Below are positions 2,788 through 51,560 of a stretch of 64,000 nucleotides of DNA, one piece after another. The notes beneath the pieces are model-generated. The model saw nothing but the letters and a program-made list of their open reading frames with translations. It ran no database searches and was not told the DNA's origin. Position numbers and translations under genes: made by a program. The stretch is from Octopus sinensis (taxonomy: Eukaryota): positions 310,001 to 374,000 of the forward strand of contig NW_021831286.1 in the NCBI RefSeq assembly GCF_006345805.1. Reading direction: 5' to 3'. How positions within the stretch are numbered: position 1 is the first letter of the stretch; each line of letters starts with the position of its first letter.

Positions 2788-2990
2788 TTAGTTTCGCATA
2801 TTCGGCTCGGCCGACGAACCGGGTTGACAAGCCGTGGAATTCAAAGCTCCCTTGGCAAAAGAGTCGGCACAGGTGACGTCCCAAACAAGCTGTTTTCCGG
2901 ATTCAAAAGCGAAAAATATACAGCCGTCCGGACGTTTTGCATCTTCAAGGACAAATCCCGTCGGTTCCAAAATGCGAGGGCCGAATCGAT
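2788..2990 (-). mobile_element. CRE-like retrotransposon REL endonuclease fragment
   Basis: EPTGFVLEDAKRPDG...GKQLVWDVTCADS, the RPDG/WDVT motifs of restriction-like endonuclease LINEs. Confidence 0.75.
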
Positions 2991-3760
2991 ATCAGAGTCC
3001 AACGATGATTCAGTAGTTGTTCTAAATTGTTTATCTTATTAATGAAAATTACTATTTATACATTAAAAATCATTAAAAAACCGGACATCATTTTTTAGAG
3101 ATTGTAGTGCTGATTAAAGACAGAATTCGTAAAAGATTTTAATCGCTTCACTCAGAGAACGAATTTAACAAAGACAAATTTATAACAGAAATTAATCAAG
3201 TTTATTATCCTGTGCGGGAAACAGCCTGATACGTCTAGGAATAATTCCCATTTTTTTATCAAAGATTGAAGGACAATCTAAATTTGTCATTCGCTGGATC
3301 AGTGCTTCAATAATTGTTTGTTCATTTTTAGCCACTTTATATTTTATTTAATACCAGTACATGAACTATCTCGATTTATTTCAGACTTTAATGACATTTC
3401 CCTGAGTTTGTCCGTAAAATAACTCTGAAAATATATAACTTTTCAACCTTATGGTCCTTTTTATGTAAATTTTCTGGAAGATCACTAATAGCTACGGTGT
3501 ATTTCGATTATAATCATCTCCTAATTAGTGTTTCTTACCTACTTATTGAGTGCAGTGATAATTAGGAGGCAGACATGTATAAATTAGGGTATTCAATGTC
3601 AATAAAAACAGGAACTAATACATATCACAGACTAAGAGATAAATTGCTATTTAAAGCATTCTAAACGTTTAATTATCTATAAATAACTTATTTTTATTAT
3701 GAAATTAAATTGATTATTATAATTTAAATAAAATATTGTTTATTTCTAGTGTGGTTGAAC

Positions 3761-4041
3761 ATGTCTATTGTGTACGAACGAGTTCCAATCGAGGATTTTA
3801 TTTACAACAAAGAAACACAAATATTCACATATCCCTGCCCATGTGGAGATCTTTTTGAAATATCCCTGGTAATGGCATAAAATATACACACAGGAAGATT
3901 TACAGGACGGTGAGGAGTATGCTGAGTGTCCTTCCTGCTCACTAACCGTATTTGTCGTCTACAACAAAGTGAGTTTATTCATTATTAGTCTAGGACGACT
4001 TTATTGGGGACTGTCAAAAACGAACAGCTGTTTTTAATTAG
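3761..4041 (+). CDS. DPH3: Diphthamide biosynthesis protein 3 (CSL zinc finger)
   Basis: Two 25-nt introns; MSIVYERVPIEDF...[30 protein letters not shown]. Confidence 0.95.
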
Positions 4042-4798: not shown

Positions 4799-7555
4799 AT
4801 GGACGTTGTGAGGCTAAAAAATCAAAAAAGTTCAATTCGTAAAGACGGTTTTTATAATAAAAATAATAACAATTTTGAAGGTTCGAAGCTTCTCAGTGTA
4901 TATGGTCTTACATCCACAGGTTTCTCAGTAATAGACTACTGTCCCCACCTCAGTCTAATAGCATACATTTCTGGGTTACCCACTCAATTTCACTTTATTA
5001 GAGGAATTGTGGTGCTCTGGTATTTGGAGACAAACACACAAACCCACGTCGTCAATCAAAGCCACAAGACCTTTCTATCTCTGTCACTTTCTCCCAATGG
5101 ACGGTACCTTGTCACATGCGAAGTAATGACTGGTCTAATCTTAGTCTGGCCATAAACCTCTCGTGCGTATTTGGGATGTCAAACTGACCACACAACTGGA
5201 CGAATTTGGAGGACATAAAGCAGTCTCCTCCGTGGTGAGACAATTCCGTAATCCAAAGGCATTTTCCGTGGACAACGAGAGATTTATATCAGTGGGGACA
5301 GAACATGACATGAATATATTTCTCTACCATATTCGCCACGGACTTGTGGCTTCTAATAAAATAGCAGCCAACGTTGGGTCCCTTCACTTCCTTAGGTCTC
5401 CAAATGTGCCTTCAGTCAGGACGGGCAGTGTGTGGTGACTGTAGGCGTCCGTCACATCAAGTTTTGGAGTTGTGGAAAGCAGAGGAGAGGGGCAGGGGTG
5501 ACTGTTCTGGCCGGGAGTTGTCCCACATTGGGCAAACTAAAGATCAACCATTTTTGCGATGTGGTGTCATATATAAGCAGAGGGGACTGTCTTATTCTCT
5601 GTTTGTCCACCTCCGGACTCATCCTTCAGTTTGACTCCACAAAATCCCTCTCCAGGAAGATTGAACTGAATGTTGGTAGTGATAATATGTTTAGTGTACG
5701 TGTTTGTGTATGAGTTTGTGTGCCCGACATGTCCTGGTTGGGTTGGAGGTGGGGAATACGCTGGTTGTGTACGACACGGAGGATTTGAGTCGACGATGTG
5801 AACTGCCATTGCTCGATCAGTACGATTTGTTAATATTCAGACTGTGTTGTGCTGGGGAGGCCACATGCAGTGTGATATCCTCCAGTTATGCCCACGATTT
5901 GGTATGTGGATGACTGATTTGTAGTGTGCGAGTATTTGGAGTGATGGGAGTCTGCTGATTTGTCGAATCTCTTCTCAATTGGATGCAGAGATCCTCCACG
6001 ACCGACATTTCCACTCGGCCCCCGTCATTTCACTCCATGTGACTGGAAGGACTTAATTTTAGATGGTGGAGGCAGACATTCGACATTTTATTTCACTCTC
6101 GTCTGACGGATATGTCAAAGAGTGGACTATTCCTGTATTCTGTGGTCTCCTTAGTCCAGGATAACTCGGGGTCACTTGAATGTACGTCCACAGCCAAGTT
6201 GCCGTGTGTGGGGGATGTTCAGTTCAGGTGCTCTGTTCTCTACCAGTCGTTTATAGCAGTTGGAGACTCGCTTGGATTTATAAGGTTTGTGTGGTGGACT
6301 GACATAGACTGTTCTGTCTGGAGGGTGCAGATTTGAAATATTCTATCAAGGCACATGAGGCAGAGGTTATGTCTTTGGAAGTATGTCCATCCCCATTTTC
6401 TAGTTGGTGTGTGTTTGTATGTAAGGACATGTGATGTTGTTGGTGTCTTCTAGTCGTGACCGGTCAGTGAGGATACACGAATTGAGTCATTTTGAGTGTA
6501 TTCTTCGGTCATCAATTCACTCTTCTTCGGTCACGTGTGTTAAACTGTTGCCGAAAGGGAGGAGTTTGAATATGATAAGTTCATCGTTGGACAAATCAGT
6601 GGTGTTGTATACACTGAGGGATGTCGAGGGGGTCATTGAATGTGAGGTAGTCAGTACTCTCGCTGTCCGAATGGCTGTTCTTGACTTTGGGGTGTGTCCT
6701 TCTCTGGGTAAATTGGTATTGGCCACGAACGACTCGACTGCAAGGTGAGTGGTGATTGAATAAGGATAGAATATATTCTCTGAGTGGGATAAGACAGTTA
6801 GGGGCAGTCAAGTTGGGAGATGACTCAATTATGTGTACGGCTGTCCGTGTTGAGGGAGAATCCGCTCTCTTCTCCACCTCCAACGGATTTGTTGTCTTTT
6901 TTGATTTGGTGTCCGATACCCCAGTGTGGACTACCAACAGTGTTTCCAGTAGTGCGGCCACTTATTGTGATGTCATTTTGTTCAGTAACTCTTTTCTTGT
7001 GGCTTCTACTCACGATGGGGCCTTGTTTGTGTGGAATCCTTCGTTTGTTTAATTTGGCTGATTATAGGTGCAATATTTTGGGCACCTGCAGAACTCGTTC
7101 GGCGTCGTGTGACATTTCAGGACGGATGTCGACCAGCTGTACTTGGTCTGATGAAGTACATCAACTCAAAAACATTTCCAGTTTATTATTTTATTAGATT
7201 TATAGATTTGATCAATTTCCCGTCCGAGGGTCGAATTAGGGTTTGTTCGTGATGTTATTTCCAGAAGTCAAATTCAATGTCTTCGCTGACCAGTCCTCTT
7301 CGGACTTCCACTCCTGTTTTGAGGGGACGAAGACGGTGGTCTCCCCCGACCAGTCTTGTCTTTGGTCCATCGGGGGATTCTCCAAGTCCTGCTGGGAATA
7401 CTTTTTATTCGGCAAAGTCGTTCTGCGGGAGTTGTGATATGAATGTATGCGACATTGAGAATAAATTGGGTGATTTGACCAATCTTACAACACGACTGAG
7501 TACTACTATCCTCGATTTGGTCAATAAGAGTTGTTTTATTCTTAGAAAAAGATGA
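4799..7555 (+). CDS. MAPKBP1: MAPKBP1/WDR62-family WD40 protein (shortened C-terminus)
   Basis: Spliced N-terminal repeats match the family: [72 protein letters not shown]. The start could be 4799 or 4779 and the 3' exon structure is approximate. Confidence 0.85.
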
Positions 7556-11779: not shown

Positions 11780-12468
11780 ATCGTAAAATAATTTCATAAT
11801 TACCAGTAAAAGCCAATAAAAACTGCATAATGTAATCATCAAGTTTTTTTTGATATCCCACTCCCATAAAAATGTTAAATGGAATATGGTTTGTAGTGTC
11901 ATATTTAGAATTATTATATTCGTAGACAATTTATTTAATAATCGCATTATATTCTCCAAACATTCCATTTGAAGCGCTTGTAGAAGATCGATCAAATTAG
12001 CAATGTATCTATCTCTTGGGCGTCTTGCAATAATAGGAGTAATAACCGGCCTTGTAGCTAGCAATTTTTTGGACTGAAATCAAATAATTTAACTAAATAC
12101 CTGACAATAAGCACATTTTTCAATTATTTTGCTAATCTCTTCCCGAGTTGCACCATATATCTTTCCCTTAAGCATAAAAAACATTTTATCTCCTCCAAAA
12201 TGTACATAATTGTCCTCACACTAACCATAATTAAATAAATTGATACTTTTATATATTTCACCTTTAACTCTTGTTCTTCTATGCAGAATAATCTGACTTT
12301 TTTATTCCTTTGGTATATGTAAGCTATATTTTCCTCAATAAGTATTCGGTTAGCAATCCTACGTAATCTAAAACGTTCTCTTCTACTGATTCCGTCATCA
12401 AATGATCCAAATTGTTTAAAAGTTCTTATTTTCAATAAATCCTCTTGTGATAGTGTAATTAGAAACAT
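11780..12468 (-). mobile_element. Ginger-like/retroviral-type integrase relic with two micro-introns
   Basis: Spliced: YIK|CEDNYVHFGGDKMF...KCAYCQ|SKKLLATRPVITPIIARRPRDRYIANLIDL (H2C2 zinc domain plus start of rve). Introns at 12221-12246 and 12074-12100; one frameshift. Confidence 0.75.
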
Positions 12469-14484: not shown

Positions 14485-16492
14485 GCAACAAAAATGAAAT
14501 TCCATTTTTTCAAAATAAGAGAATAAAGCCGATTGTTAGTGTGATTAAAGAATAAGTAGTTAATAGCTGACGACATCGAATTCTGGGTAGGTAACTTGAT
14601 TCATAACTCCACAAAGATTTTCTTTTCGCGAAATTTTGATATATCCATGATCCCCCCAGCTAGTTCCCCAAGAATTCTTTATAAGCCAGTAATCCAAGCC
14701 ATGATTTGTTGTTCCATATCCTACCAGCAAAACTGCGTGGTCCAGAATGCTAGAAGCTAAAGAAATAACAGTTTAAGAAAACAGCATCTCAAATCTGAAT
14801 ATACTCCATGGTTATATAAGTTAAAGGTCCAAGGACTCGCATCAATTCCGATGGATAGGGGGCCTTACAATATCAAGCAAGACGAGGCTACCTTTTTGAA
14901 TGAGTGCGTTCATTATGGAGTTTTCTGTTGGAAAAATTCTTTTGAAAGTTTTAAATTTAATGTATTGTTTAAAAGGGCCGAGTTTACAAGTCATGTCCTT
15001 CAAATGAGAATAATCACTTACCTCCCCTTTGTATTTTCCATACTCAGAGGTGGTGGCCAATCCAAAATTCTTTATGAAGGAATAAGATCCGACGTCCAAT
15101 CCTCCGAAACATCCTTGATTCTCTTGATTCCATGAACAGTCCACCAAATGTTGTTCAGAGAAATCAATTTTAAGACCGGTCTTTATGTAATAGTGGGATT
15201 CAAACACTCCTGTTGTTGCAAAAGCCCAGCATGATCCGCAAGCCCTTTGATTTTTCACAGGTGTCACTGCATCTGCAAATCAACTCAATGTCATTACCAG
15301 ATGACACCCAACTGAAATTAAGTGGCAGCATTTTGTTATTGGAGAAATCTGAAAATTTCTTTGAATCTTGTTCCATCAAATCATGTCCTTTCTTTCCCAG
15401 ATGACATTCTCTTTTCGAAGAGCCTGTTCCATGGTTGTACCAGTGCTTTATTCCTCGTTCATTAAGTCTCAGCTTGTAAGAACGAGTCTTCTTGTTATGT
15501 TCAGCTACTAGTCTAGGCCACTCAAATCACCCAAATCACCTCTTTAGTTCAACAAGACTTCTCTGCTTTTCTTTCCAAGAATCTTCGTTGTCCTCAAAAC
15601 CTCCGTGGAATTTTCTCCAGATATCATAGTGCTCTGCAAGACCCTCATAAAAATGTTGATTCTGACAATGATCTGTACATGATGCAAGTGAGAATAATAC
15701 TCAGAAACAGTTTTTTAATATCCTTATCGGTTTTTTCAGCAGGGATTTGCTTATAGTTTGTATATTTGAGAATATTTTTCCTAATTAAATTCTTTTGGTC
15801 ACCGTGAATTGTAAATATAATCTCGTATCTAACTGGAATCAAATTCAGATCCGTGAAAAATATATCGGTATGAATAATATTAAAATAAATTGATCTTTGC
15901 CAAGCAAAACAAAGCCCATTTCTGCCCAAGTCACCGTTATTGTCGGACTGACATTTATAGGTCCCGGGCAGTTTCTTGCAAATATATATAAGTTAACAAA
16001 ACCTTAAAATTAGTCATAATGGGAAAGATTCTTTTATAAATTCCTCTTTCTGAATGTTTTATGCATCCTTTTCCGGCGACTCCATCAAAGGACGTCGGAA
16101 AAATGTATATATTTCCATATTTCAGAGAATGTAACAAATATGTTTTTCCTATGGTTGTAGATTAGTTATTTTATACCAGAATCTTCTGATATAATAGACG
16201 AATCTGAGAACGAATCAAACCTTACTTTTAAATCTATGGTTGTATTATCGAATTGGATCTCCATTTTTGCATCAACCTGGTACCTATCGTGAATCTTTGG
16301 CATGTCATTTTCTGATGACTTCACTATGTGGGAAACTAAACGAGTCGAGCTAAAAATGACTCACAAAGTAATAAGGATATCATGGCCTGAATAATATTAA
16401 GGTCAAGTTATTTTTATGTTGAACATTTGATTAGCCACCTTATTATAATATTTGAATAAAATAATTAATTATATTTTAAGTCGTTTACAAGA
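14485..16492. repeat. Left arm of a ~2-kb inverted segmental duplication (partner 28985-30985)
   Basis: The reverse complement aligns by eye across promoter, all exons and introns and 3' UTR, at roughly >90% identity. Confidence 0.95.
14560..16383 (-). CDS. Cathepsin-L-like cysteine protease, 26/29-kDa (cfaD-type) architecture, copy A
   Basis: Nine introns. Short hydrophobic N-terminus, N-terminal extension, I29-like region, [10 protein letters not shown] (Cys), [11 protein letters not shown] (His), IKNSW (Asn). The spliced frame is open in the segments traced; the DCSW..N.GC.GG motif matches the 26/29-kDa family. Confidence 0.9.
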
Positions 16493-23692: not shown

Positions 23693-26116
23693 ATGGTGAA
23701 TTGCGAATACTCAAGAGAAGAAATACTGAACAACCACAAATGTATTTTAGTTTGAATAACATGGAAATTAGACAACATAATCAAATATCGGCCAGTAGTC
23801 AACCAGTCACGTTTATTTAGCGTCTCACTTACACCCATCGAAGAACAAAGATTTCCAAATTTAACAAAAGACAAATCTGAAATTAAAATTTACTTATTTT
23901 TAAGAAATATAACAGTTTAATATGTTTCCCCAAATTCAAATCAGTTACAAACATGGCTGGACAACCCTCTCCAGCAGATCACCCCGAAGGATGTACTCCG
24001 CCACCACCCAATACTGGACCCAGAAATCCTCGAAATGTTCTCAAAAGTCTTTACATTTCTCGATCGTTACGGATTTGTCAATTTTGGACTATTTGAGACA
24101 ACTTCTCCCCCAGAAATAAATTGCGATAAATCCGTGGTCGTGATTGGCTGCGGAATTTCAGGAATTATCGCGGCAATTAAACTGCAGTCTCTTGGGATCA
24201 AAGTAGTCATCCTTGAAGCTAAGGTCCTCATTGTTAATGAAGTGAAGGATCGGGTTGGTGGAAGGATTTGGACTTATACTGCCCCTGACGGTCAACACGG
24301 TGATTTGGGAGGAATGATTTTGCTGGGACAGGGCGGAAACCCCCTGACAACGATAATCCGACAGATCGACAAAAAACTTATAATCCTTAAGGAGACTTGT
24401 CCTCTTTTTGACATTGACGGAACTCCAGTTGTCTTTGTTTTTGATTAATTTTTTAAGATCAGGAAATCTGATGACGATTATGCAGAAAAAGAGTTCAAAG
24501 AAATCTTGGATATGGCCTCTACGTTTTTCCACCAGGTGGAACCAGTTCCTGGTTTAGGACTAGGTGATGTAATAGATAGATTAGTAAAGTAATACAATTA
24601 ACTAATCGTTTTAGAACTAGAGAACTCGATCGGCAGAAAAAGAAATTAAAAATTTTGACCAAAGTTTTTCAAGGACTGAAGCAAATTCAGAAAATAAACC
24701 TAAAAGTAGTTTATTTAGTGTTATTTCGCAGTTGATTGAATTACGTAATTCAATTATGGAGTCTTACTATAAATTCAAGTCAGTTTCGAGTGGAAATACA
24801 ATAGTTCCCGAATTCCTAGTAAAGTATCTTCAATATGAACTTTCCAAGGCATGTTCTGTAAGTATTTCTCATATTTAATTGTGTTTTTATTCAATATTGA
24901 TTTCAAAATATCTTTTATCTAGAAATTTGACCAACTTGTTTGTCGGAGAGATAACATCCAAGATATTTTGAAAAAGCTGAGTTTAAGGTCAGATGTCATT
25001 CGAAATTCAACACAAAGTGGGGATGGCTCGTCCGCTTTGTTCCAGAGATTGTTGAATTGGCATTTTGCGGACATGGAATTCGCAAACTCGTGCCATTTTC
25101 GATTTTTGGGTGGTCGCCACTGGGATCAAGATGACGGAAATGAATTTCCCGGAAAGCATTTCACTTGTTTTTATCTAAAATTATATTTTAGTGGAAAATG
25201 GTATTTCGTCACTTGTAAATCCATTGGCTGACCCAATTAGAAGTCAAATAATATTCGAGGCAACTGTAAATGAAGTAATTTATAATGAAAATGGTTATTA
25301 TAATGATTTTTAATTTGGACTAGGAGTTGAAATTAAGTATTGCAATCGTTCGGAGTTGAAATCGGTAAAGGCAGACGCAGTACTCTGCACTGTCCCATTG
25401 GGAGTCCTCAAAAAGAGCATTGAAGGTGTTGGGATTAAATTTTATCCTCCTCTCCCAGAATGGAAAATTAAAGCAGTAGAAAACCTAAATTTTGGAGTTA
25501 TGAATAAAGTTTTTGTAAAATTAATTATTTTTAGGTCATTTTGTTTTTTGATGTATTTTTTTGGGATATCGCTTCCAATGCGATTGGGAAGCTTAACGAA
25601 TGTGCGACTACTCGAGGAGAGTTTTTCCAATTTTGGAATTTTGGACATCAAAAAGCCGTGATTGCCTTTGTGTCAGGGGAGGCTGCGGAAAATATCGAAC
25701 ATGTCGAGGACACAGTGACTGTTCAACGATGCCTTGAGGCTCTCAGAGGAATATTTCCTAGAACTAAAATTCCTCAGGTCTTCATTTAAGCTGTAATTTT
25801 AGCCTAAAAGCTATTTTATCACTCGATGGAAGTCCGATCCCCACGTCGGGGGGTCTTATTCGAGCGTGGGAGTGAATGGAAGTGGTTTTTCTATCTGAAT
25901 GTGGATATTCTAGGAGAGGATTACGATCTTCTCGCGGAATCGTTGGGATTTACTATAAAAAATGAAAACGTGGATTTTTCCTCTAAAGGTTGTCAGCGCC
26001 TTTATTTTGCCGGAGAACATACTATTGCTAATTATCCTGCAACAATTCATGGAGCTTTTCTTAGTGGTCTTAGAGAAGCTGGAAAAATCGCTGATAACTT
26101 TTTTGGTACACCATAA
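23693..26116 (+). CDS. KDM1A: Lysine-specific histone demethylase 1 (SWIRM + amine oxidase + tower)
   Basis: LQTWLDNP...[19 protein letters not shown]|[51 protein letters not shown]. Confidence 0.95.
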
Positions 26117-28984: not shown

Positions 28985-30985
28985 AGTTAAAGATATAATT
29001 AATTATTTTATTTAAATATTATAATATAATGGCCAACCAAATGTTCAACATACAAATAACTTGACCTTAATATTATTCAGGCCATGATATCCTTATTACT
29101 TTGTGAGTCATTTTTAGCTTGACTCATATAGTTTTCCACATAGTGAAGTCATCAGAAAATGACATGCCAAAGATTGACGATAGGTACCAGGTTGATGCAC
29201 AAATGGAGATCCAATCCGAGAATAGAACCATAGATTTAAAAGCAAGCTTTGATTCGTTCTCAGATTCTTCTATTATATCAGTAGATTCTGGTATAAAATA
29301 ACTAATCTACAACCATAGGGGAAACATATTTGTTACGTTCTCTAAAATATGGAAATATATACATTTTTCCGACGTCCTTTGATGGAGTCCCCAGAAAAAG
29401 ATGCAAAAAACTACTACAAATAGATAATTATAAAAGAATCTTTCCCATTATGACTAATTTTAAGGTTTTGTTAAGTTATATATATTTGCAAGAAAATGCC
29501 CGGGACCTATAAATGTCAGTCCGACAATAACGGTGACGTGGGCATAAATGGGCCTTGTTATGCTTGGAAAAGATCAATTGATTTTAATATTATTCATACC
29601 GATATATTATTCACGGACATGAATTTGATTCCAGTTAGATACGAGATTATATTTACAAAAATTATCAATGACCAAAAGAAGTTTATTCGTAAAAATATTC
29701 TCAAATATACAAACTATAAGCAAATCCCTACTGAAAAAACCGATAAGGATATTAAAAAACTGTTTCTGAGTATTATTCTCACTTGCCTCATGTACAGATT
29801 ATTGTCAGAATCAACACTTTCATGAGGGTCTTGCAGAGCACTATGATATTTGGAGAAAATTCCACGGAGGTTTTGAGGACAACGAAGATTCGTGGAAAGA
29901 AAAGGAGAGGAGTCTTGTTGAACTAAAGAGGTGATTTGGGTGATTTGAGTGGCCTAGATTAGTAGCTGAACATAACAAAAAGACTCGTTCTTACAAGCTG
30001 AGACTTAATGAACGAGGAATAAAGCACTGGTACAACCATGGAACAGGCCCTTCGAAAAGAGAATGTCATCTGGGAAAGAAAGGACATGATTTGATGAAAC
30101 AAGATTCAAAGAAATTTTCGGATTTCTTCAATAACAAAACGGTTCCAATTAATTTCAGTTGGTTGTCATCTGGTAATGACATTGAGTTGATTTGCAGATG
30201 CAGTGACACCTGTGAAAAATCAAGGGGCTTGCGGATCATGCTGGTCTTTTGCAACAACAGGAGTGTTTGAATCCCACTATTACATAAAGACCGGTCTTAA
30301 AATTGATTTCTCTGAACAACATTTGGTGGACTGTTCATGGAATCAAGAGAATCAAGGATGTTTCGGAGGATTGGACGTCGGATCTTATTCCTTCATAAAG
30401 AATTTTGGATTGGCCACCACTTCTGAGTATGGAAAATACAGAGGAGAGGTAAGTGACTATTCTTATTTGAAGGACAAGACTTGTAAACTCGGCCCTTTTA
30501 AACAATACATTAAATTTAAAACTTTCAAAAGAATTCTTCCAACAGAATACTCCATAATGAACGCACTCATTCAAAAAGGTAGCCTCGTCTTGCATGATAT
30601 TGTAAGGCCCCCTATCCATCGGAATTGATGCGAGTCCTTGGACCTTTGGCTTATATTTCGGTGGAGTATATTCAGATTTGAGATGCTGTTTTCTTAAACT
30701 GTTATTTCTTTAGCTTCTCGCATTCTGAACCACGCAGTTTTGCTGGTAGGATATGGAACAACAAATCATGGCTTGGATTACTGGCTTATAAAGAATTCTT
30801 GGGGAACTAACTGGGGGGATCATGGATATATCAAAATTTCGCGAAAAGAAAATCTTTGTGGAGTTATGAATCAAGTTACCTACCCAGAATTCGACGTCGT
30901 CGGCCATTAACTACTTATTCTTTAATCACACTAACAACCGGTTTTATTCTCTTATTTTGGAAAAATGGAATTTTATTTGTGTTTT
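28985..30985. repeat. Right arm of the ~2-kb inverted duplication (partner 14485-16492)
   Basis: See the left arm. Confidence 0.95.
29084..30910 (+). CDS. Cathepsin-L-like cysteine protease, 26/29-kDa (cfaD-type), copy B
   Basis: Nine 24-29 nt introns; [31 protein letters not shown]; the spliced frame is open to TAA at 30908-30910. Confidence 0.92.
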
Positions 30986-43812: not shown

Positions 43813-45952
43813 TTAATAGTTCAAGTTAGAGTTATAATGTTTATACCGAATTCCGTCCCTGTTCACATCAAGAACAGGGCCATGTCGAGAATTAGGTTGA
43901 AAAAGAGAACGAAAAGTCTTAATTAATAATCAATATAGGGATACTTTTTTGCCTTTATAAACTTGAGTGTATACAAAGTATAAAGCATATGTAGGAATCG
44001 CAATCACACTGACTAAGAACATCCCCCACCCCAATCCTTCCGAAAAAGCTGGCATTGTTACACCATCATAAGCAAAAGGCTCATAAGTGACGGCAGCGAA
44101 TATAAAAATTGCCTGAAAGCAATTTAATTTGTAAAAATACAATTAGAATTAATGGCGATGTGACCGTCCACGTAAATTTCCAGTAATAATTTGGAACAGA
44201 TCCGCTCATCATGGTCATGTCCTTTGAAAACTCGTCAATTCCGTAAATCCAACACACAGTCATGACTTCACAAAAGGCAATAATAACTAAAGAAAGTCCC
44301 GCAGCCTTTTTATCCATTAGCGTAACCCAATAAACTCCTGCCTTGAGCATGAAATAGATATACCAACCTGACTGGCTTGAGGAAGTCCAAGAATGAACCA
44401 AAGAAGACATGAGACCAAAGTTGTTGTGACTTTCCAACGATTCAAAAACCCGATCGAGTCAAAAATAATCGATAGAAAAGTTTCGTGCATTGCAAACTAG
44501 GAATGATAAACACGTCATACCTGACTATCCAACCCGACAGCGATGATCATGAGAAATAGCAGACATGACCAAAAAGGGGCGACAGGCAAAGTTACTAAAA
44601 CTTCTGGATACACAACAAATATCAGTCCTGCCCCTGCAAATAAAACAAACGGGGTGACCATCTGCAACAACTTTATCAACAGGAAGTCCAGTTTTATAGC
44701 TTAAATAACCAATGATAGAAAACACAGCGAAACCAGCGTATATACTTGTGCCGCAGTTAATCAGAGCACACATCACGGCGTCTCTGCATTAACAAAGCTT
44801 GAACAAACCTGCTGAACTTGTTTTCAAAGTTGTTATATGATGCATAAAGCAGAAAAGACCCGAACCCGATTCCAAGGGAGTAGAATATTTGTGTGGCTGC
44901 AGCAATCCAAACTGAGCCATCCTTTAGTCTGGACCAGTCTGGTTTTATAAAATATGAAATTCCAGTAGAAGCCCCGGGTTGGAGAGCTGTTCTGATAAGA
45001 ATAATAGTTATTAAAATGTAAGGAAGTATTGCTGTAACATATATGACCTAGAAAATGAAATATTTCCGTACTTTTCCGGACGTCTTGATGCCCTTAGAAA
45101 GACAAACTGCCACCAAGGCCCAAGATATAGCCAATGCTATCACTAATTTTGGAACAAGTTTTCCTGTGGTTGCGATGCTGTCTGTTTGCATTAGAATTTG
45201 ATTTCTATAATGGAAATTGGTAAAAATAATTACTTCCAAAATTCTTCTGAAGGAGAAATTCCGCGATATGTCGAGCAGTTAAAACTCTTCCAAAGTGTCT
45301 CTAAATGTGCAGCTGAAAATGCGTTTTTTTTGCTCAAAAATGTTTCAATGGTTTTATTATCACATAAATAGTTCTTGTTGATTAATGCTATAAGATTATT
45401 TAGCAAAATTAAACAAATATTGCTTATTCCCAGTGAACTAATGTTGAGTTGGAGATTGATTGTTCTGTCTGTGCAGTTGGCTGTGTTCCAAGCATTTCCA
45501 CACGTGCTCCATGGAAGCTGAGATGTAAAAGATTCGTACAAGTACACAAAGGCCCAGGAAATGATTGTATTATAGTACATTGTAACCAATCCGGACATGA
45601 TCCCCATGGCATAGCCAATACCTACGTATATCAATCACAAATCGCATGCCTTTGAAAATTGGTACCATCGAAAAGGCATCCAAAGGTCTGGCAGAACTGA
45701 ACTGCCCAACACCAAATTCTAAATGGAACAACGGGATTCCCGCGAGTAATAAGAATATGAAATATGGGACCAAGAAGGCGCCCCCTCCATTCGCATATGC
45801 CAAATAAGGGAACCGCCATATATTTCCTAGTCCAACTGCGTATCCGACAACTGATAGGATGAACTGAATGTGATTTTCCCATGTTTCTACTATCACATAA
45901 AACAAAAAACATGTATACATGAAACTTTTTTTTCTGAGGATTTAGATTTCAT
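43813..45952 (-). CDS. SLC6 Na+/Cl- dependent amino-acid transporter (glycine/proline-like subgroup)
   Basis: GYAVGLGNIWRFPYL (Gly, not Asp, in TM1), LPWSTC..WNT, GIKTSGK|VIY, TQIFYSLG, YPEVLVTLP, GLDSQ|F; the spliced frame is open in the segments traced. Confidence 0.95.
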
Positions 45953-47089: not shown

Positions 47090-47372
47090 GATATGAATTC
47101 CCGAAGCAAACACCGGTTGGCCAAAAAAGCTTCCAATTTGAAAGGGAAAATTGAAAAACTAGTAATTCCTTCGGACTGTCTGGCAGAGATGGAGACCAAT
47201 GCGCGTTCTCTACACTTGATGTCTCACGGAGGCGTCAACAAAATTGAATTTCTCTGTCGCCGGAATTACTTTATCGTGAAAAGTGAGGTCATAAGAAAAG
47301 TCATATCAAAGTGCGATGTCTGCAAGTTTTCCATCCACTTAAAGTTAAGTCTGCTTTAGTAATGGTTTAGAC
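47090..47372 (+). mobile_element. Ginger-like integrase relic, 5' part (interrupted by hAT insertions)
   Basis: H2C2 domain LHLMSHGGVNK...KCDVC; a 27-nt intron at 47344-47370; continues after 51202. Confidence 0.7.
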
Positions 47373-49995
47373 CAGGGGTTCTCAAGTGCGGCCCTCGGGG
47401 CCGCATGCGGCCCCGAGAATCTTTTTTGCGGCCCCGACTTCCAAACTTTAAAATAAATTTTGGATATAAAATTAATTGTAAATTAATATTATTAAAGATA
47501 ATATTTTAACTACACGTGTTTGTAAATATATTTCAGGTTTAGTATTTTTTCATGCCATCAAAGAAATATCGGTAACTTTTGTCGAAGTGGTCGCAGTTTT
47601 TTTAGGCCGTTTAAAAAACTAATAATTTTTGAGGTGGAATATATATATTTTATTTAAGTCGCTATCAATAATTTAAAAATATTATTAAATTTTTTACTAA
47701 TTTATTTTCTAATTTTTTTAATATTATGGCGAGCATGTACCTAATATTGATAATAACTGGCACTATAGGTCACATGGAAAATCTGTTGTGGACTTATGCA
47801 ACATCAAATTCCGACGCTCCCAATAAGTAAGGAGGATGCAGTGCATTTTCTGCAAAATGTGGATATCCTTTCAAAATCACGTATATGTCCGAAGGGACAT
47901 CAGATGGAATTAGTCTTGGGACCGAAGCTCAATTGGAAATGCTCAAGAGTTGGTTGTAGAGTCCAATGTTCTATTAAAAAAGGTATAATTTCTCTCAAAT
48001 AATTCTAGATACCTGGTTAGAGAATTGTAGATTGCCATTTGAGGATGTCATCGCCTACATATACTTTGGAGTTACGATAGGCATACCTTCAAATGGCTTC
48101 ATCACGATACAATTGGGGTGAACATACATATGTCGATTGGGCTATGTTTTTTTACGTGAAGTCTGTGTGGACGCACTTGTTAAAAGATCTGACGGCAAAA
48201 TTGTATTATTAATGTTTATTTCGGTGGTCCTGTAGGATTTGGAGGTAGACGAGAGTATGTTTTCCAAACGGAAAAACAACTCTGGAGAAATTATTAAACT
48301 GCTATTCCATTTTTTGTGATGAATGTTGTCCGTCAAATATACAAAATATTGCAAAACGATTACCATTAAGTAATGATACTATTACAAGAAGAATAGAATG
48401 TATTTTTGAGGACCTTGCCCGTCAGCTAATCAAGTTCTTTACTATTAAAAATAATTTTTATAGAACATCGAAAGATTTTTTATATCATTCTTTTGCTGTC
48501 GACACGAGTAAAGATATCTCTGATACCGAACAAATGGTCGTATGCATTAGAGGTGTCACTTCGGATTTTAAATTTCTGAAGAATTTTTTCTCTTCGTTCA
48601 TTAAAAGGCACTACAAAAGGAATGGATGTACTTAACGAATTCCTTGAAAGTATTAAAGAATTTGACATTGATCCTTCCAAATAATTTCCATATGTACTGA
48701 TGGGGGGGCGAATATGATTGGTCGTAATAAAGGGTTTCATGGACTTTATTCAGAATGGAGACTTGAAAAAAATCTTGATCCTATATTTTGGCAACATTGT
48801 ATCATTCATCAGGAGAATATAATCGCAAAGTCACTTAAAATGCAAAATGTAATAGTACGGTGTTGTCCATTGTGAATTGGATACGCGGTAAATCTCTCAA
48901 TCACAGGAGATTTAAAAAAATGTTAGTGGAAATTGACACAGTGCATAATGATGTGCTTTACCATACCACTGTTCGATGGTTGAGTCGTGCCGCGTGCCTC
49001 AAAAGGTATATTTGCTTGAATAGAAGTTAGATTTTATGAACTACTCCCTCAAATAAGAGAATTTGTTAAAGACCACAAATACCATGATTTGTTGAGCAGT
49101 AAGAGTGGATTGCCGATTTAGCTTTTTGGGTAGATCTAACCTCTCATTTATCGTCGTTAAATTGTGAATTACAGGGGAAATATAAATTTTGCCATCAACT
49201 CTATGGATCTATTGCTTCTTTTATATCAAAATTAAAACTTTGGAGGGATCAAATAATGCTCAAAGATACAATTCATTTTACTTGTTTGAGTGAAAATAAA
49301 GCTAACGGTTCATTTGAAAAATATACTACCATTATCAGTCACCTTATTGTTGAATTTGAAAAACGTTCTAAGGTTTATTAAATTTAGTTTATTTTAAGAA
49401 TTTTGATGAAATTTTGCCATCAATGAAAATTTTTTGCAGCACCATTCAATATAGATCCTAGAAATGCTCCGCCATCACTCCAATTAGAATTGATAGACCT
49501 TCAATCAGATGTGCAATTTACCTCAGTGCAAAAGATTGAAAATTTAATGGAATTTATAGTTCACTTCCCAAGAAAAATATCCGAATATACTCATAAATGC
49601 TTATAAATATGCTTCAATGTTCGGATCCACTTATTTATGTGAGTCAATTTTCAGTAAATGATTCACATAAAAAATAAATATCGAAATAAATTGACTGATA
49701 ATCACTTATGCCAGCTTTTGCGATCTACATGTGCCTCCTATATTCCGTGTTATGACAAATTAGTTAACAATTAGTTAAAATAGCTAACAATTTTTCGTTT
49801 TAGTTAACAATTTTTCGTTTTAGTCATTTTCCTTTAATTAATTAAGACTAACTATCTCGGTTCTGAATAAAAAATGAATCTAAAAAAAAATTAGTTAAAA
49901 GTTAATGAAAGTTTTAATTTAATTTATTCTGCGGCCCCGAAGACAATGGTTAATTATCGATTTGGCCCCGACGTTAAAAAACTTGAGAACCCCTG
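47373..49995 (+). mobile_element. hAT element 1 (GTF2IRD2/SPIN-like transposase, decayed, three micro-introns)
   Basis: TIRs CAGGGGTTCTCAA / TTGAGAACCCCTG, TSD GTTTAGAC; motifs DTSKDISDTEQ, HCIIHQE, VRWLSR, FGSTYLCE. Introns at 48434-48463, 49006-49030 and 49373-49398. Confidence 0.93.
47760..48300 (+). mobile_element. Merlin (IS1016/ISXO2-like) transposase fragment nested in hAT 1
   Basis: CPKGHQM...WKC..GCR..CSIKK|DTWL, then GGP..VDESMFSKRK; a 26-nt intron at 47983-48008. Confidence 0.75.
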
Positions 49996-50003
49996 GTTTA
50001 GAC

Positions 50004-51194
50004 CAGCGGTTCTCAACCGCGGCCCGCCACAATTTTGGTGCGCCGATTAAAAATTAAAAAATATATTAAATATTTTTTGTTTTTATATAAATATTTGTAC
50101 ATTAATGTTTAAATAATATTGTTTGTGATGTATGATAAACGTGTTAAACTAAGTAGAAAAATTATTCATGAAAATCGTGCATATAACTCCGAATGGGAGG
50201 AAAAAAATTTTCGTTTTTGAAGAAAATGGTAACGCACATTGCCTAATTTGTCATTCTGTCATACGATGTCTTAAGACATATAATGTCGAGAGGCATTATT
50301 CGAAACATTCTTCTGAATATGATTCACTTCAAGGTGAATCAAGAAAAATAAAATTTCAATCTCTGAAATCAAATCGCAAACTACAAACGAAATTGTTAAA
50401 ACAGCCCCACTTATCAAGATCCGTAACATTAGCTTCATACAAAATAAGTAATCTACTTGCAAAAAATATTCAGATGGAGAATTCATTAAGCAAGCTATTC
50501 ATATGTTTACAAAAGAATGTTGATCTTTAGAAATTAAAAAAAATGGTCGAAACTTACAGCTTAGCAATGATACAGTTTCTCGGAGAATTGAGAGCATATC
50601 TGACGATCTTCATTACCAGCTACTCACTGAATCCAAGTTTTTCGTACACTATTCTATTGCTCTTGACATCACTAAAGATATCAGTGATACAGAACAAATG
50701 GCCGTGTTTATTCGGGGTGTCATGCCTGACTTCAAAATTTACGAAGAATTTCTCTCGTTACGTAGTTTTCATGGTTCTACTAAAGGAGTTGATATATTTC
50801 GAGAATTTCGCGATTGTCTTGAAATGGCACATTTGAATCCTTCAAAAATTGGTCGATAATTTGAACTTGGTCGATAATGCTCAAAAAATGCATCAGTCTT
50901 CGGATCAACGTATACATGTGAAGCTCTTTTCAGCAAACTTACGCAAATAAAAACAAAGTATCGAAATCGATTGACTGACGGACACCTAAATCAACTTTTA
51001 CGCACATCGTGTTCGACCTTTACTCCCTGTTTCGACAAACTAATAGACGCAAAACAGAATCAAGTCTCGAATTGATTTTTATTACTTAATAAAGCCTTCT
51101 TTTGATTAATAACATAAAATATTTTTTGTGCGGCCCGCAAAGATATTCTTAATTATCGATTTGGCCCATGAGCTAAAAAGTTTGAGAACCCCTG
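50004..51194 (+). mobile_element. hAT element 2 (sister of element 1, internally deleted)
   Basis: TIRs CAGCGGTTCTCAA / TTGAGAACCCCTG, with TSD GTTTAGAC on both sides; BED-like CLIC..RHY, DITKDISDTEQ, then a jump to FGSTYTCEALFS. Confidence 0.93.
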
Positions 51195-51202
51195 GTTTAG
51201 AC

Positions 51203-51560
51203 CGTGGATGAAACGAATCATGTTTTCGTCTCTGCTCCGAATGAGCGGTTTCAAATAGATCTTATTGATCTGAAAAGGTTTGAAAACGTTAACGGAGGAT
51301 AAAAATAGATTCTATCCGTTATTGACGTCTATAGTCGGTTTTATGATTATAATTATCATAGTTTTGCTTTAATAAATAAGTCAGGAGTCGAGGTTTCAAA
51401 AAATCGAGGAATTCTAGGAACCCCACAGACCTCTTCAACTTTGATTCCCATAAAAGCTATCTATGAGTCGATTGACTCTTCCAACCCTGGAGAATAGATG
51501 TCATCTCTATTGATTTGTATCAAAGGCTGTTTTAAACGAGTCCCCAGAGGAGGTTGGCCA
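51203..51560 (+). mobile_element. Ginger-like integrase relic, 3' continuation
   Basis: TVDETNHVFVSAPNERFQIDLIDL...ILSVIDVYSRF (rve start), with stop codons. Confidence 0.7.

Follow-up and report, generated by a model that had tools for sequence, protein, structure and literature searches.

Two adjacent hAT elements in the window

Two hAT elements lie side by side in the window (the whole 64-kb stretch of DNA analyzed), each bounded by copies of the same 8-bp target-site duplication. The following features were delimited in this region.

47365–47372, no strand: target-site duplication GTTTAGAC, copy 1 of 3, read directly
47373–49995, + strand: hAT element 1 (family 1), non-autonomous copy, recognized by perfect 15-bp terminal inverted repeats (TIRs) and match to L001
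47552–47571, + strand: transposase start codon and first codons (MPSKKYR), surviving upstream of the filler and identical to L001 10001–10020
47572–48283, + strand: 712-bp foreign filler in place of 325 bp of 5′ transposase coding sequence; breakpoints by comparison with L001
47983–48008, + strand: candidate 26-nt GT..AG micro-intron in a Merlin-like fragment, with a frame switch between 47984 and 48005 relative to the uninterrupted P0147 and P0129
48284–48433, + strand: remainder of hAT exon 1, from ...GEIIK to ...ARQLIK, by sequence and homologue alignment
48434–48463, + strand: intron 1 (probable), 30 nt, GT..AG, phase 2, in frame, stop-free
48464–49005, + strand: hAT exon 2, putative RNase-H-like catalytic core, with DUF4371/TNP-like Pfam matches below threshold
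49006–49030, + strand: intron 2, 25 nt, GT..AG, phase 2, frameshifting and containing a stop; splicing obligatory for an intact ORF
49031–49372, + strand: hAT exon 3, by homologue alignment; Ka/Ks of 0.22 against lineage B
49373–49398, + strand: intron 3, 26 nt (27 nt in clean copies), GT..AG, phase 0, with an in-frame stop; splicing obligatory for an intact ORF
49399–49774, + strand: hAT exon 4, carrying the dimerisation domain (Pfam Dimer_Tnp_hAT), CESIFS motif and stop codon; Ka/Ks of 0.12 against lineage B
49996–50003, no strand: target-site duplication GTTTAGAC, copy 2, common to elements 1 and 2, from the sequence
50004–51194, + strand: hAT element 2 (family 2), internally deleted; terminal repeat CAGCGGTTCTCAACC, tblastn match to P0002
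50611–50643, + strand: stretch of element 2 homologous to the intron 1 site (HYQLLTESKFF), reading QLLTESKFFVHYSIALDITKDISDTEQ with no insert
51195–51202, no strand: target-site duplication GTTTAGAC, copy 3, from the sequence

Element 1 is a member of the hAT superfamily, having an 8-bp target duplication, short TIRs (CAGGGGTTCTCAAGT, perfect over 15 bp at 47373–47387 and 49981–49995) and a C-terminal dimerisation domain. Its target duplication agrees with nTnnnnAC, the hAT target consensus (hobo/Hermes). The dimerisation domain was identified at residues 507–570 of the spliced protein (PF05699, E 2.5e-6, 27.6 bits with a cut-off of 21.4), and matches of that protein to DUF4371 and TNP-like_RNaseH_N were under their Pfam cut-offs. 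For the unspliced first 365 residues (P0004), PF27073 and PF14291 are precomputed. The CESIFS motif of exon 4 is putatively catalytic, as in hAT enzymes. Filler excluded, element 1 matches L001:9817-12076 at 99% identity. With filler in place of its 5′ coding region, the window copy is non-autonomous.

Element 2 lacks codons ~245–535 and hence the sites of introns 2 and 3. Twelve of the first 13 bases match between its terminal repeats. When the element 2 protein served as a query, the only matches were six foreign ORF fragments, with no more copies from this genome. Both hATs interrupt an integrase relic (46.8–47.4 kb and 51.2–51.6 kb) that is too decayed for intron scoring.

Alignment to homologues by tblastn, found using a 77-aa exact ORF of the window as query, revealed a Merlin/IS1595-like transposase pseudogene fragment within the filler. 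Four of these homologues (P0129, P0142, P0147, and P0153) carry DDE_Tnp_IS1595 (PF12762); the fragment itself had no Pfam match and a weak NCBIfam IS1595 match (E 0.1), and the repaired composite used as a protein query had no matches. Removing the insert of this fragment gives KKDTWLEN, comparable to LTDTFLSG in P0129. GT..AG inserts of 26–27 nt were seen in this fragment and in an integrase-like gene of the window, on weaker evidence than the hAT inserts.

Three GT..AG inserts in the transposase gene

Three GT..AG inserts had been predicted in element 1, and they were found at exactly the coordinates given: insert 1 at 48434–48463 (GTTCTTTACTATTAAAAATAATTTTTATAG, 30 nt), insert 2 at 49006–49030 (GTATATTTGCTTGAATAGAAGTTAG, 25 nt), and insert 3 at 49373–49398 (GTTTATTAAATTTAGTTTATTTTAAG, 26 nt). 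Excising insert 1 yields ...QLIK|TSKDFLYHSFAVDTSKDISDTEQ, and excising inserts 2 and 3 yields ...ACLKR|FYELLPQ and ...EKRSK|NFDEILP, which reproduces the restored LKRFYEL and KNFDEI. The predicted spliced junctions read ATCAA|AACATCG (intron 1), CTCAAAAG|ATTTTATG (intron 2), and TTCTAAG|AATTTTGA (intron 3). Intron 2 is a clean insertion in TGCCTCAAAAG|ATTTTATGA, at an AAG|A site whose flanks are identical in the outgroup L003; the outgroup DNA at this position, TGCCTCAAAAGATTTTATGA, is precisely both flanks joined.

Four hAT inserts could be delimited by aligning them without gaps against intronless homologues; all four have GT..AG ends, as does the Merlin-like insert. By our base-composition estimate, such ends have a chance of ~0.003 per insert, or at most ~0.015 if the boundaries slide, and their occurrence here exceeds chance. 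The three inserts are very probably real spliceosomal micro-introns, and the transposase gene of element 1 appears to be split by two or three introns of 25–30 nt, of which two would be obligatory and one is probable.

The probable one is insert 1. Because it is in frame and stop-free, translating as FFTIKNNFYR, the reading frame does not force its splicing, and the frame is open with or without it (597 or 587 aa). The NCBI gene model (P0004; XP_029657494.1) translates through it and ends within intron 2. Insert 1 might thus be a translated 10-residue insertion before FLYHSFAVDTS, at a site that, judged from sequence context, is probably situated in a loop. We regard this as rather unlikely, given that the insert is 30 nt long, begins and ends with GT..AG and has a GC content of 4/30, which is equalled by just 0.5% of CDS windows. 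It also lies exactly where P0002, L002, L003, and element 2 align without a gap, confirming the earlier observation that the neighboring element has no insert at this site. Moreover, the host LSD1-like gene carries the same kind of insert, a 24-nt GT..AG segment at 24224–24247 that is in frame, stop-free, and missing from human LSD1.

Copies of the element and the intact ORF

Five more family 1 copies with the same inserts were found on contigs of an Octopus sinensis assembly, 99.6–99.9% identical. Including the window, the six copies occupy five distinct insertion sites, and two fetched loci are sequence-identical. Target duplications of 8 bp were read elsewhere as ATCTAGAC (L001 A), GCCTAGAC (L001 B), GTCTAGAT (L011), and CACTAGAC (L009), and that of L010 as GTATAGAC/ATATAGAC with one mismatch. 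Intron 1 is identical across all six copies, and an insert 3 of 27 nt is present in four of the other five (L001, L010, L011). The window differs from the other copies almost solely by 13 one-base deletions in A/T runs. Homopolymer deletions are typical of long-read assemblies left uncorrected, so the apparent frameshifts of the window copy are probably assembly errors and the "decay" seen in element 1 downstream of 48284 is probably an artefact.

Two copies, L001:9817-12076 and L010:3817-6076, read as one complete ORF of 587 codons, ATG to stop, only once the inserts are excised. Their products are one residue apart, and neither copy has any other defect in the 1761 nt of coding sequence. Against two ORFs that are uninterrupted in genomic DNA, P0002 (1800 nt) and P0001 (1983 nt), the spliced protein aligns colinearly and without gaps, all three sites included. 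The contig of P0001 starts at the terminal repeat. No exon-joining protein appeared in the first protein search, and a collection of 15 billion proteins held no exact match to the full-length spliced protein or to any of three other forms, alternatively or partly spliced.

Introns of cellular genes and probable identity of the host

Sixteen introns of 22–29 nt were delimited in cellular genes of the window (SLC6-like, LSD1-like, cathepsin-like, and unnamed). Fifteen are GT..AG with a median of 25 nt and one is a 28-nt GC-AG intron, so the lengths of the transposon inserts (25, 27, and 30 nt) fit the host type. A whole-window survey of GT..AG segments bridging ORF pairs gave a weak excess in the 25–29-nt bin, with 11.0 against 1.2–7.1 in noisy controls made of seven dinucleotide pairs; it served solely to choose clear single-solution host introns.

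In dicyemids, the median intron is 27 bp and about one third of introns are at least 30 bp (PMC6543705), and the splice signals have shrunk to GTa and AG (PMC6543705; PMC13644364). Dicyema japonicum inhabits O. sinensis (PMC6736024). Because the 22–29-nt introns of the cellular genes follow the dicyemid pattern, the host of the window DNA is almost certainly a dicyemid, such as D. japonicum or a close relative, and dicyemid contamination is the probable source of several RefSeq proteins labelled "Octopus sinensis".

Distribution of the introns among lineages

The closest elements in other genomes have similar terminal repeats and 53–70% protein identity, and are uninterrupted at all three sites. 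Their uninterrupted genomic ORFs represent no fewer than three other assemblies or runs (L004, L002/L003, and L005-7). The ~600-aa proteins among the best 120 matches, 11 of which were included in our trees, are single ORFs, many on contigs of 2–5 kb. Introns at the same positions in outgroup transposases would have pointed to shrinkage and loss; the foreign genomic elements are uninterrupted at these positions, which favors gain.

Within the same genome, a second, diverged lineage (lineage B; family 1 is lineage A) carries a 27-nt GT..AG intron at L001 3712–3738, at the codon boundary and phase of intron 3. At site 2, lineage B has a 10-nt AT-rich frameshifting insertion that aligns loosely inside intron 2 and is of low complexity. 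Lineage B and element 2 are each represented by a single, deleted, and decayed copy, with B scored cleanly at site 3 and element 2 at site 1. Introns 1 and 2, on this sampling, have so far been seen solely in lineage A. Between A and B, Ka/Ks is 0.22 in exon 3 and 0.12 in exon 4 and synonymous sites are saturated, which indicates that selection has acted on the protein encoded by exon 4, with an in-frame stop lying ahead of it.

Lineages A and B group together with 86% support, although this could reflect long-branch attraction. Element 2 groups with the intronless foreign elements P0001-3 (90% bootstrap) and shares 58–62% protein identity with element 1 compared with 68–72% with intronless foreign elements. 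The presence of intron 1 in one hAT and its absence from its neighbor had been taken as a sign of ongoing gain or loss. Element 2 is no sister copy of element 1 and synonymous sites are saturated; because it belongs to a different lineage, the contrast reflects an old divergence rather than an ongoing polymorphism. A distant hAT of the same genome (hAT-X) is uninterrupted at all three sites and two Tc1/mariner ORFs have no introns, so the suggested generality across transposons is not supported.

Origin of the introns

The comparisons above support lineage-specific intron gain in family 1, with at least one intron, and probably three, gained within 1.76 kb of coding sequence. We consider it likely that family 1 is a young mobile hAT with host-size micro-introns gained in the dicyemid lineage and that the window copy is a non-autonomous member. 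Element 1 would then be a copy of a recently mobile element of the GTF2IRD2/ZBED5/FAM200-like clade, which moves as DNA, so that every copy would carry the introns. Production of the full-length transposase would require removal of introns 2 and 3 by the host spliceosome, and this protein would include exon 4 with its dimerisation domain and CESIFS motif. Because the closest foreign elements have no introns, intron 3 would have arisen in an ancestor shared by lineages A and B, before their split; introns 1 and 2 would have arisen in lineage A. Element 2 would represent a separate lineage, grouped with the intronless foreign elements and having no intron at site 1.

A broader proposal holds that the genome has a currently active mechanism inserting 25–30-nt introns de novo, recorded by its transposons. 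It could draw on the number of lineage-specific introns (at least three per 1.76 kb of a gene with intronless relatives), on the similar inserts in the Merlin-like fragment and the integrase-like gene, and on the clean insertion of intron 2 at AAG|A. Yet all six copies carry the introns with no copy-to-copy polymorphism, the presence/absence contrast spans lineages with saturated dS, and hAT-X and the two Tc1/mariner ORFs are uninterrupted. When each intron was locally aligned to 40 nt of each flank with 1000 shuffles, p ranged from 0.16 to 1.0; the introns showed no similarity to one another (p ≥ 0.13) or to any other sequence of the 64 kb and the fetched loci, including no other match at up to four mismatches in the window plus L001 (~84 kb). 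The comparison of introns with each other and with their flanks, proposed as a check, thus detected no similarity, and an active intron-creating route is not supported; there is no sign of present-day intron creation. We therefore find such a mechanism unlikely. Equally little weight is given to the reading in which transposons entered the dicyemid lineage intronless and then repeatedly acquired host-sized micro-introns by a process that may still be operating. That reading would count at least three introns in one hAT lineage together with the Merlin-like and integrase-like candidates, and would place ~25–30 nt of AT-rich DNA into AG|R sites. Under it, retention of intron 2, which would leave a truncated protein of 365 residues, might regulate transposition, by analogy with P-element intron retention.

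Two specific origins were rejected for the sequence at hand. No family of similar intron copies was seen in the ~84 kb searched, in disagreement with an introner model, although so small a sample makes this a weak test. Tandem duplication of an AGGT-containing exon segment was discarded because the intron ends do not repeat the adjacent exon, although old duplications may have decayed.

The introns could also be ancestral to the hAT clade, shrunken in the dicyemid and lost in relatives, which would make the pattern one of loss instead of gain. Intron 3 is indeed old and common to A and B, and dicyemid cellular genes retain ancestral intron positions with shrunken introns, at least as the work of Ogino (2010) is cited in PMC6543705. 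However, the uninterrupted ORFs of other assemblies or runs (three or more), the single-ORF ~600-aa proteins among the best 120 matches, the missing intron at site 1 of element 2, and the uninterrupted distant hAT of the same genome mean that many parallel losses would be needed, which makes ancestral introns very unlikely.

Finally, it is highly improbable that the inserts are unspliced indels in dead copies that rely on an intronless master elsewhere: the window copy lacks autonomy, such a master acting in trans could sit outside the ~150 kb of this genome that was examined, and the spliced protein forms had no exact match in the protein collection, but all four hAT inserts are GT..AG with host-size lengths, they are shared by six copies at five insertion sites and predate the burst that yielded these near-identical copies, two copies are free of any other defect once the inserts are removed, and exon 4 behind intron 3 has been under purifying selection across a divergence that saturates synonymous sites.

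Relation to known systems and implications

Family 1, as a mobile hAT with probably gained micro-introns, shares its domain set with the intronless GTF2IRD2/ZBED5/FAM200-like hATs (P0001, P0002, and the Ciona savignyi P0003 and P0006; L002-L007), namely a SPIN-DOC-type zinc finger, a putative DUF4371/FAM200 RNase-H-like core, and a hAT dimerisation domain, at 53–72% protein identity. Both groups have 8-bp target duplications and a length of ~2.3–2.4 kb, and their terminal repeats are similar (CAGTGATTCTCAACCGCGG compared with CAGGGG/CAGCGGTTCTCAA). They differ in that the ORF of the intronless elements is uninterrupted, whereas family 1 carries three inserts of 25–30 nt, and lineage B one or more. 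Introns also occur in other hATs, such as maize Ac and medaka Tol2, whose transposase mRNA is spliced by the host. The introns of those elements occupy other positions and have sizes usual for their hosts, in contrast to the lengths of 25–30 nt seen here, at the animal lower limit.

The transposon introns belong to the same length class as the micro-introns of dicyemid cellular genes (median 27 bp) and share their GTa...AG signals (PMC6543705; PMC6736024; PMC13644364). Unlike the cellular introns, which are reported, in the source as cited above, to be ancestral and shrunken, they have no counterpart in relatives and look gained. The dicyemid micro-intron papers (PMC6543705; PMC6736024; PMC13644364) make no mention of transposon introns.

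Introners (PMC9860276; PMC12130899) likewise link transposable elements and intron gain, but they are mobile elements turned host-gene introns and form families of similar sequences with element ends. The relation is reversed here, with introns inside a transposon gene that are too short for elements and mutually dissimilar. The same cross-lineage logic underlies work on CACTA transposases (PMC4158355) and on domesticated genes, which serve as a zero-intron baseline (PMC3369469). In that work the organisms are plants and mammals and the introns are of normal size, with mostly losses in CACTA.

Few clear intron gains are known in animals, since it is usually uncertain what the ancestral state was; intronless transposase relatives give a clean zero baseline. 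To our knowledge, dicyemids are an animal lineage with nearly the shortest known introns. If splicing is confirmed, their transposons would provide a record of when and where micro-introns arise, as well as a natural test of the minimal sequence needed by an intron of 25–27 nt. Gene models for such genomes need to allow introns shorter than 30 nt, since the NCBI model of this transposase stops inside intron 2.

Two hAT Elements and Three Short Inserts

A decayed integrase-like gene in the window is interrupted by a head-to-tail pair of different hAT elements. The first of them, element 1 (family 1), carries three short inserts in its transposase gene:

47373-49995: element 1, perfect 15-bp terminal repeats CAGGGGTTCTCAAGT
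48434-48463: insert 1, 30 nt, GT..AG, in frame and stop-free, reads FFTIKNNFYR
49006-49030: insert 2, 25 nt, GT..AG, contains a stop and shifts the frame
49373-49398: insert 3, 26 nt in the window, GT..AG, contains a stop
50004-51194: element 2 (family 2), internally deleted; retained codons match approximately 1-244 and 536-592 of P0002, an uninterrupted foreign hAT transposase ORF

Reading of the window sequence confirmed the originally predicted coordinates and GT/AG ends of all three inserts, as well as the predicted restoration of the peptide, with excision giving QLIK/TSKDF..., ACLKR/FYELLPQ, and EKRSK/NFDEILP (slashes mark the junctions). The predicted absence of insert 1 from the neighbor was likewise found: element 2 reads QLLTESKFFVHYSIALDITKDISDTEQ at 50611-50643, without an insert. 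The 8-bp target GTTTAGAC is present three times, before element 1 (47365-47372), between the elements (49996-50003), and after element 2 (51195-51202), which indicates that one element inserted in the target duplication of the other. Targets at five family-1 sites follow the common pattern nnnTAGAY. In element 1, a 712-bp stretch of foreign DNA (47572-48283) stands in place of 325 bp after codon 7, so that the window copy is unable to encode a full transposase; this filler carries a fragment related to IS1595/Merlin-type transposases and looks like DNA captured during gap repair. In the integrase relic, TAA and TAG stops at 51290-51300 (GG*K*ILSVIDVYSRF), at positions where related integrases would be expected to have tyrosines, are compatible with a decayed pseudogene.

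The best database match to element 1 is P0004 (XP_029657494.1), a RefSeq entry under the name of Octopus sinensis; from its protein cluster, three additional RefSeq proteins and four additional loci were obtained. The further copies, on contigs VCDQ01002078.1, VCDQ01011168.1, VCDQ01006159.1, VCDQ01013161.1, and VCDQ01002361.1 of GCA_006345805.1, are as follows:

L001:9817-12076: 99% identical to element 1, on the contig of P0004
L008 and L009: mutually identical, with a 270-bp internal deletion
L010: full-length, 99.87% identical
L011: full-length, frameshifted; directly adjoins the apparent end of another hAT

Loci L008-L011 contain the same inserts as element 1 and have different target duplications. 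In a 1.7-kb alignment of window 48284-50003 with L001:10346-12076, the window shows 13 one-base deletions and one insertion, all in A/T runs; apart from these, the copies differ by a pair of neighboring substitutions and by three mismatches at the 3′ terminus/target site. Such A/T-run indels are typical of long-read assemblies that have not been polished, which suggests that the frameshifts of element 1 are probably not real, and apparent frameshifts throughout the window should be distrusted.

Evidence for the Inserts as Probable Introns

Insert 3 is 27 nt long in clean copies. In L001 and L010, removal of the 25-nt and 27-nt inserts leaves a complete ATG-to-stop ORF of 597 codons (587 when the 30-nt insert is taken out as well), and the two products differ by one residue. 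The unspliced ORF ends within insert 2 at 365 codons, which is the NCBI annotation. Gaps in the alignment of the spliced protein with the uninterrupted P0002 are confined to the inserts, and the hAT dimerisation domain (Pfam) is located in exon 4, downstream of both obligatory inserts.

A second, diverged lineage (B; L001:2977-4372), with 55–59% protein identity to the lineage of element 1 (A), also has a 27-nt GT..AG insert, which contains an in-frame stop and matches insert 3 exactly in codon boundary and phase. Synonymous sites are saturated between A and B, and Ka/Ks is 0.22 in exon 3 and 0.12 in exon 4. Judged from these sequences, exon 4 appears to be maintained as protein behind a stop, which requires that insert 3 be removed from the mRNA. 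For insert 1 the case for an intron is less certain: its ends, length, position, and GC content (4/30, equaled by 0.5% of coding windows) favor one, but splicing is not needed to keep the reading frame open. A comparable in-frame insert without a stop (24 nt, GT..AG; 24224-24247) lies between LEAK and DRVGGR in the host's LSD1-like amine oxidase gene and is absent from human LSD1; it appears to be a host micro-intron that would escape notice if only the reading frame were considered.

Probable Gain of the Introns

That the inserts are copy-specific indels is contradicted by their presence in all six family-1 copies. Descent from an intron-bearing ancestor, with loss elsewhere, would place introns at the same positions in outgroups, and none were found there; the closest foreign elements (L002-L007) are uninterrupted in genomic DNA:

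L002, L003: uninterrupted across all three sites
L004: 1800-nt ORF between terminal repeats
L005-L007: approximately 2.36 kb, apparently complete, 1983-nt ORF, each starting at the 5′ terminal repeat

The terminal repeats of the foreign elements, CAGTGATTCTCAACCGCGG, are similar to those of element 2. In neighbor-joining trees, A pairs with B (86%), element 2 joins the foreign elements (90%), and the clade uniting all five has 100% support. Within the same genome, the L010 copy is inserted into a distant hAT (2968-3834 and 6048-6987, minus strand) that has 37–39% protein identity to P0002, is colinear with it through all three sites, and lacks micro-introns throughout the aligned 570 residues. 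Another hAT fragment of this genome has no insert at site 3, and two Tc1/mariner ORFs are uninterrupted. Outgroup DNA at site 2 is TGCCTCAAAAGATTTTATGA, which makes intron 2 a clean insertion of 25 nt without target duplication; lineage B has only a 10-nt frameshifting insertion there. In the simplest history, intron 3 would have been gained before the A–B split, and introns 1 and 2 later in lineage A.

The four introns resemble neither their flanks, nor each other, nor the rest of the window and L001; therefore, within this limited sequence, origins by tandem duplication or from introners, both suggested for checking, are unsupported. The proposal that gain or loss is ongoing fared no better, because the introns are common to six of six copies, with no polymorphism pointing to a still-running process.

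Ac and Tol2 are DNA transposons with introns in their genes. The presence, gain, and loss of introns in such genes are established (e.g., PMC4158355). The dicyemid genome papers examined do not mention transposons, and no publication on introns in dicyemid transposons turned up in literature searches. The hAT introns are a new, clean example of a known phenomenon and not a new kind of system.

Host Introns and Probable Source Organism

Introns of cellular genes in the window, read from SLC6-like, LSD1-like, cathepsin-like, and other unnamed genes, are 22–29 nt long and comprise 15 GT..AG introns (median 25) and one 28-nt GC-AG intron. The latter is the best fit at the first junction of the SLC6-like gene (45622-45649, minus strand; FKG/IGYAMG), and its GC start could be an assembly base error. 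The cathepsin-like cysteine protease is present as two near-identical copies in opposite orientation, with introns at matching positions:

~14.7-16.2 kb, minus strand: introns 15513-15539 (27 nt) and 16149-16176 (28 nt)
~29.3-30.7 kb, plus strand: introns 29931-29957 (27 nt) and 29291-29318 (28 nt)

Reports of introns this short in animals are limited to dicyemids and myxobolid myxozoans, in which the splice signals have shrunk to GTa and AG (PMC13644364). Dicyemid micro-introns are already established, with a median of 27 bp (PMC6543705), and O. sinensis is host to Dicyema japonicum in its renal sacs (PMC6736024). The window shares its young hAT family with the contigs of L001 and L008-L011, and several unrelated repeats with L001 (77–89% identity). 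We infer that the window and these "octopus" contigs are of dicyemid origin; the shared family and repeats indicate that XP_029657494.1, XP_029655752.1, XP_029656231.1, XP_029655454.1, and XP_029654578.1, named for octopus, probably derive from a dicyemid contaminant.

Other Transposons in the Window

The original prediction placed micro-introns in three transposon families. They are well supported for hAT only, and are plausible in the Merlin-like and integrase-like sequences:

47983-48008: candidate intron in the Merlin-like filler, 26-nt GT..AG; the frame changes across it
48203-48235: second candidate in the filler, 33 nt, ambiguous
12074-12100 and 12221-12246, minus strand: candidate inserts of 27 and 26 nt in an integrase-like gene

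The integrase-like gene (~12.0-12.5 kb, minus strand) has an H2C2 zinc finger and weak domain support, and may be a host gene or a transposon of the Ginger type.
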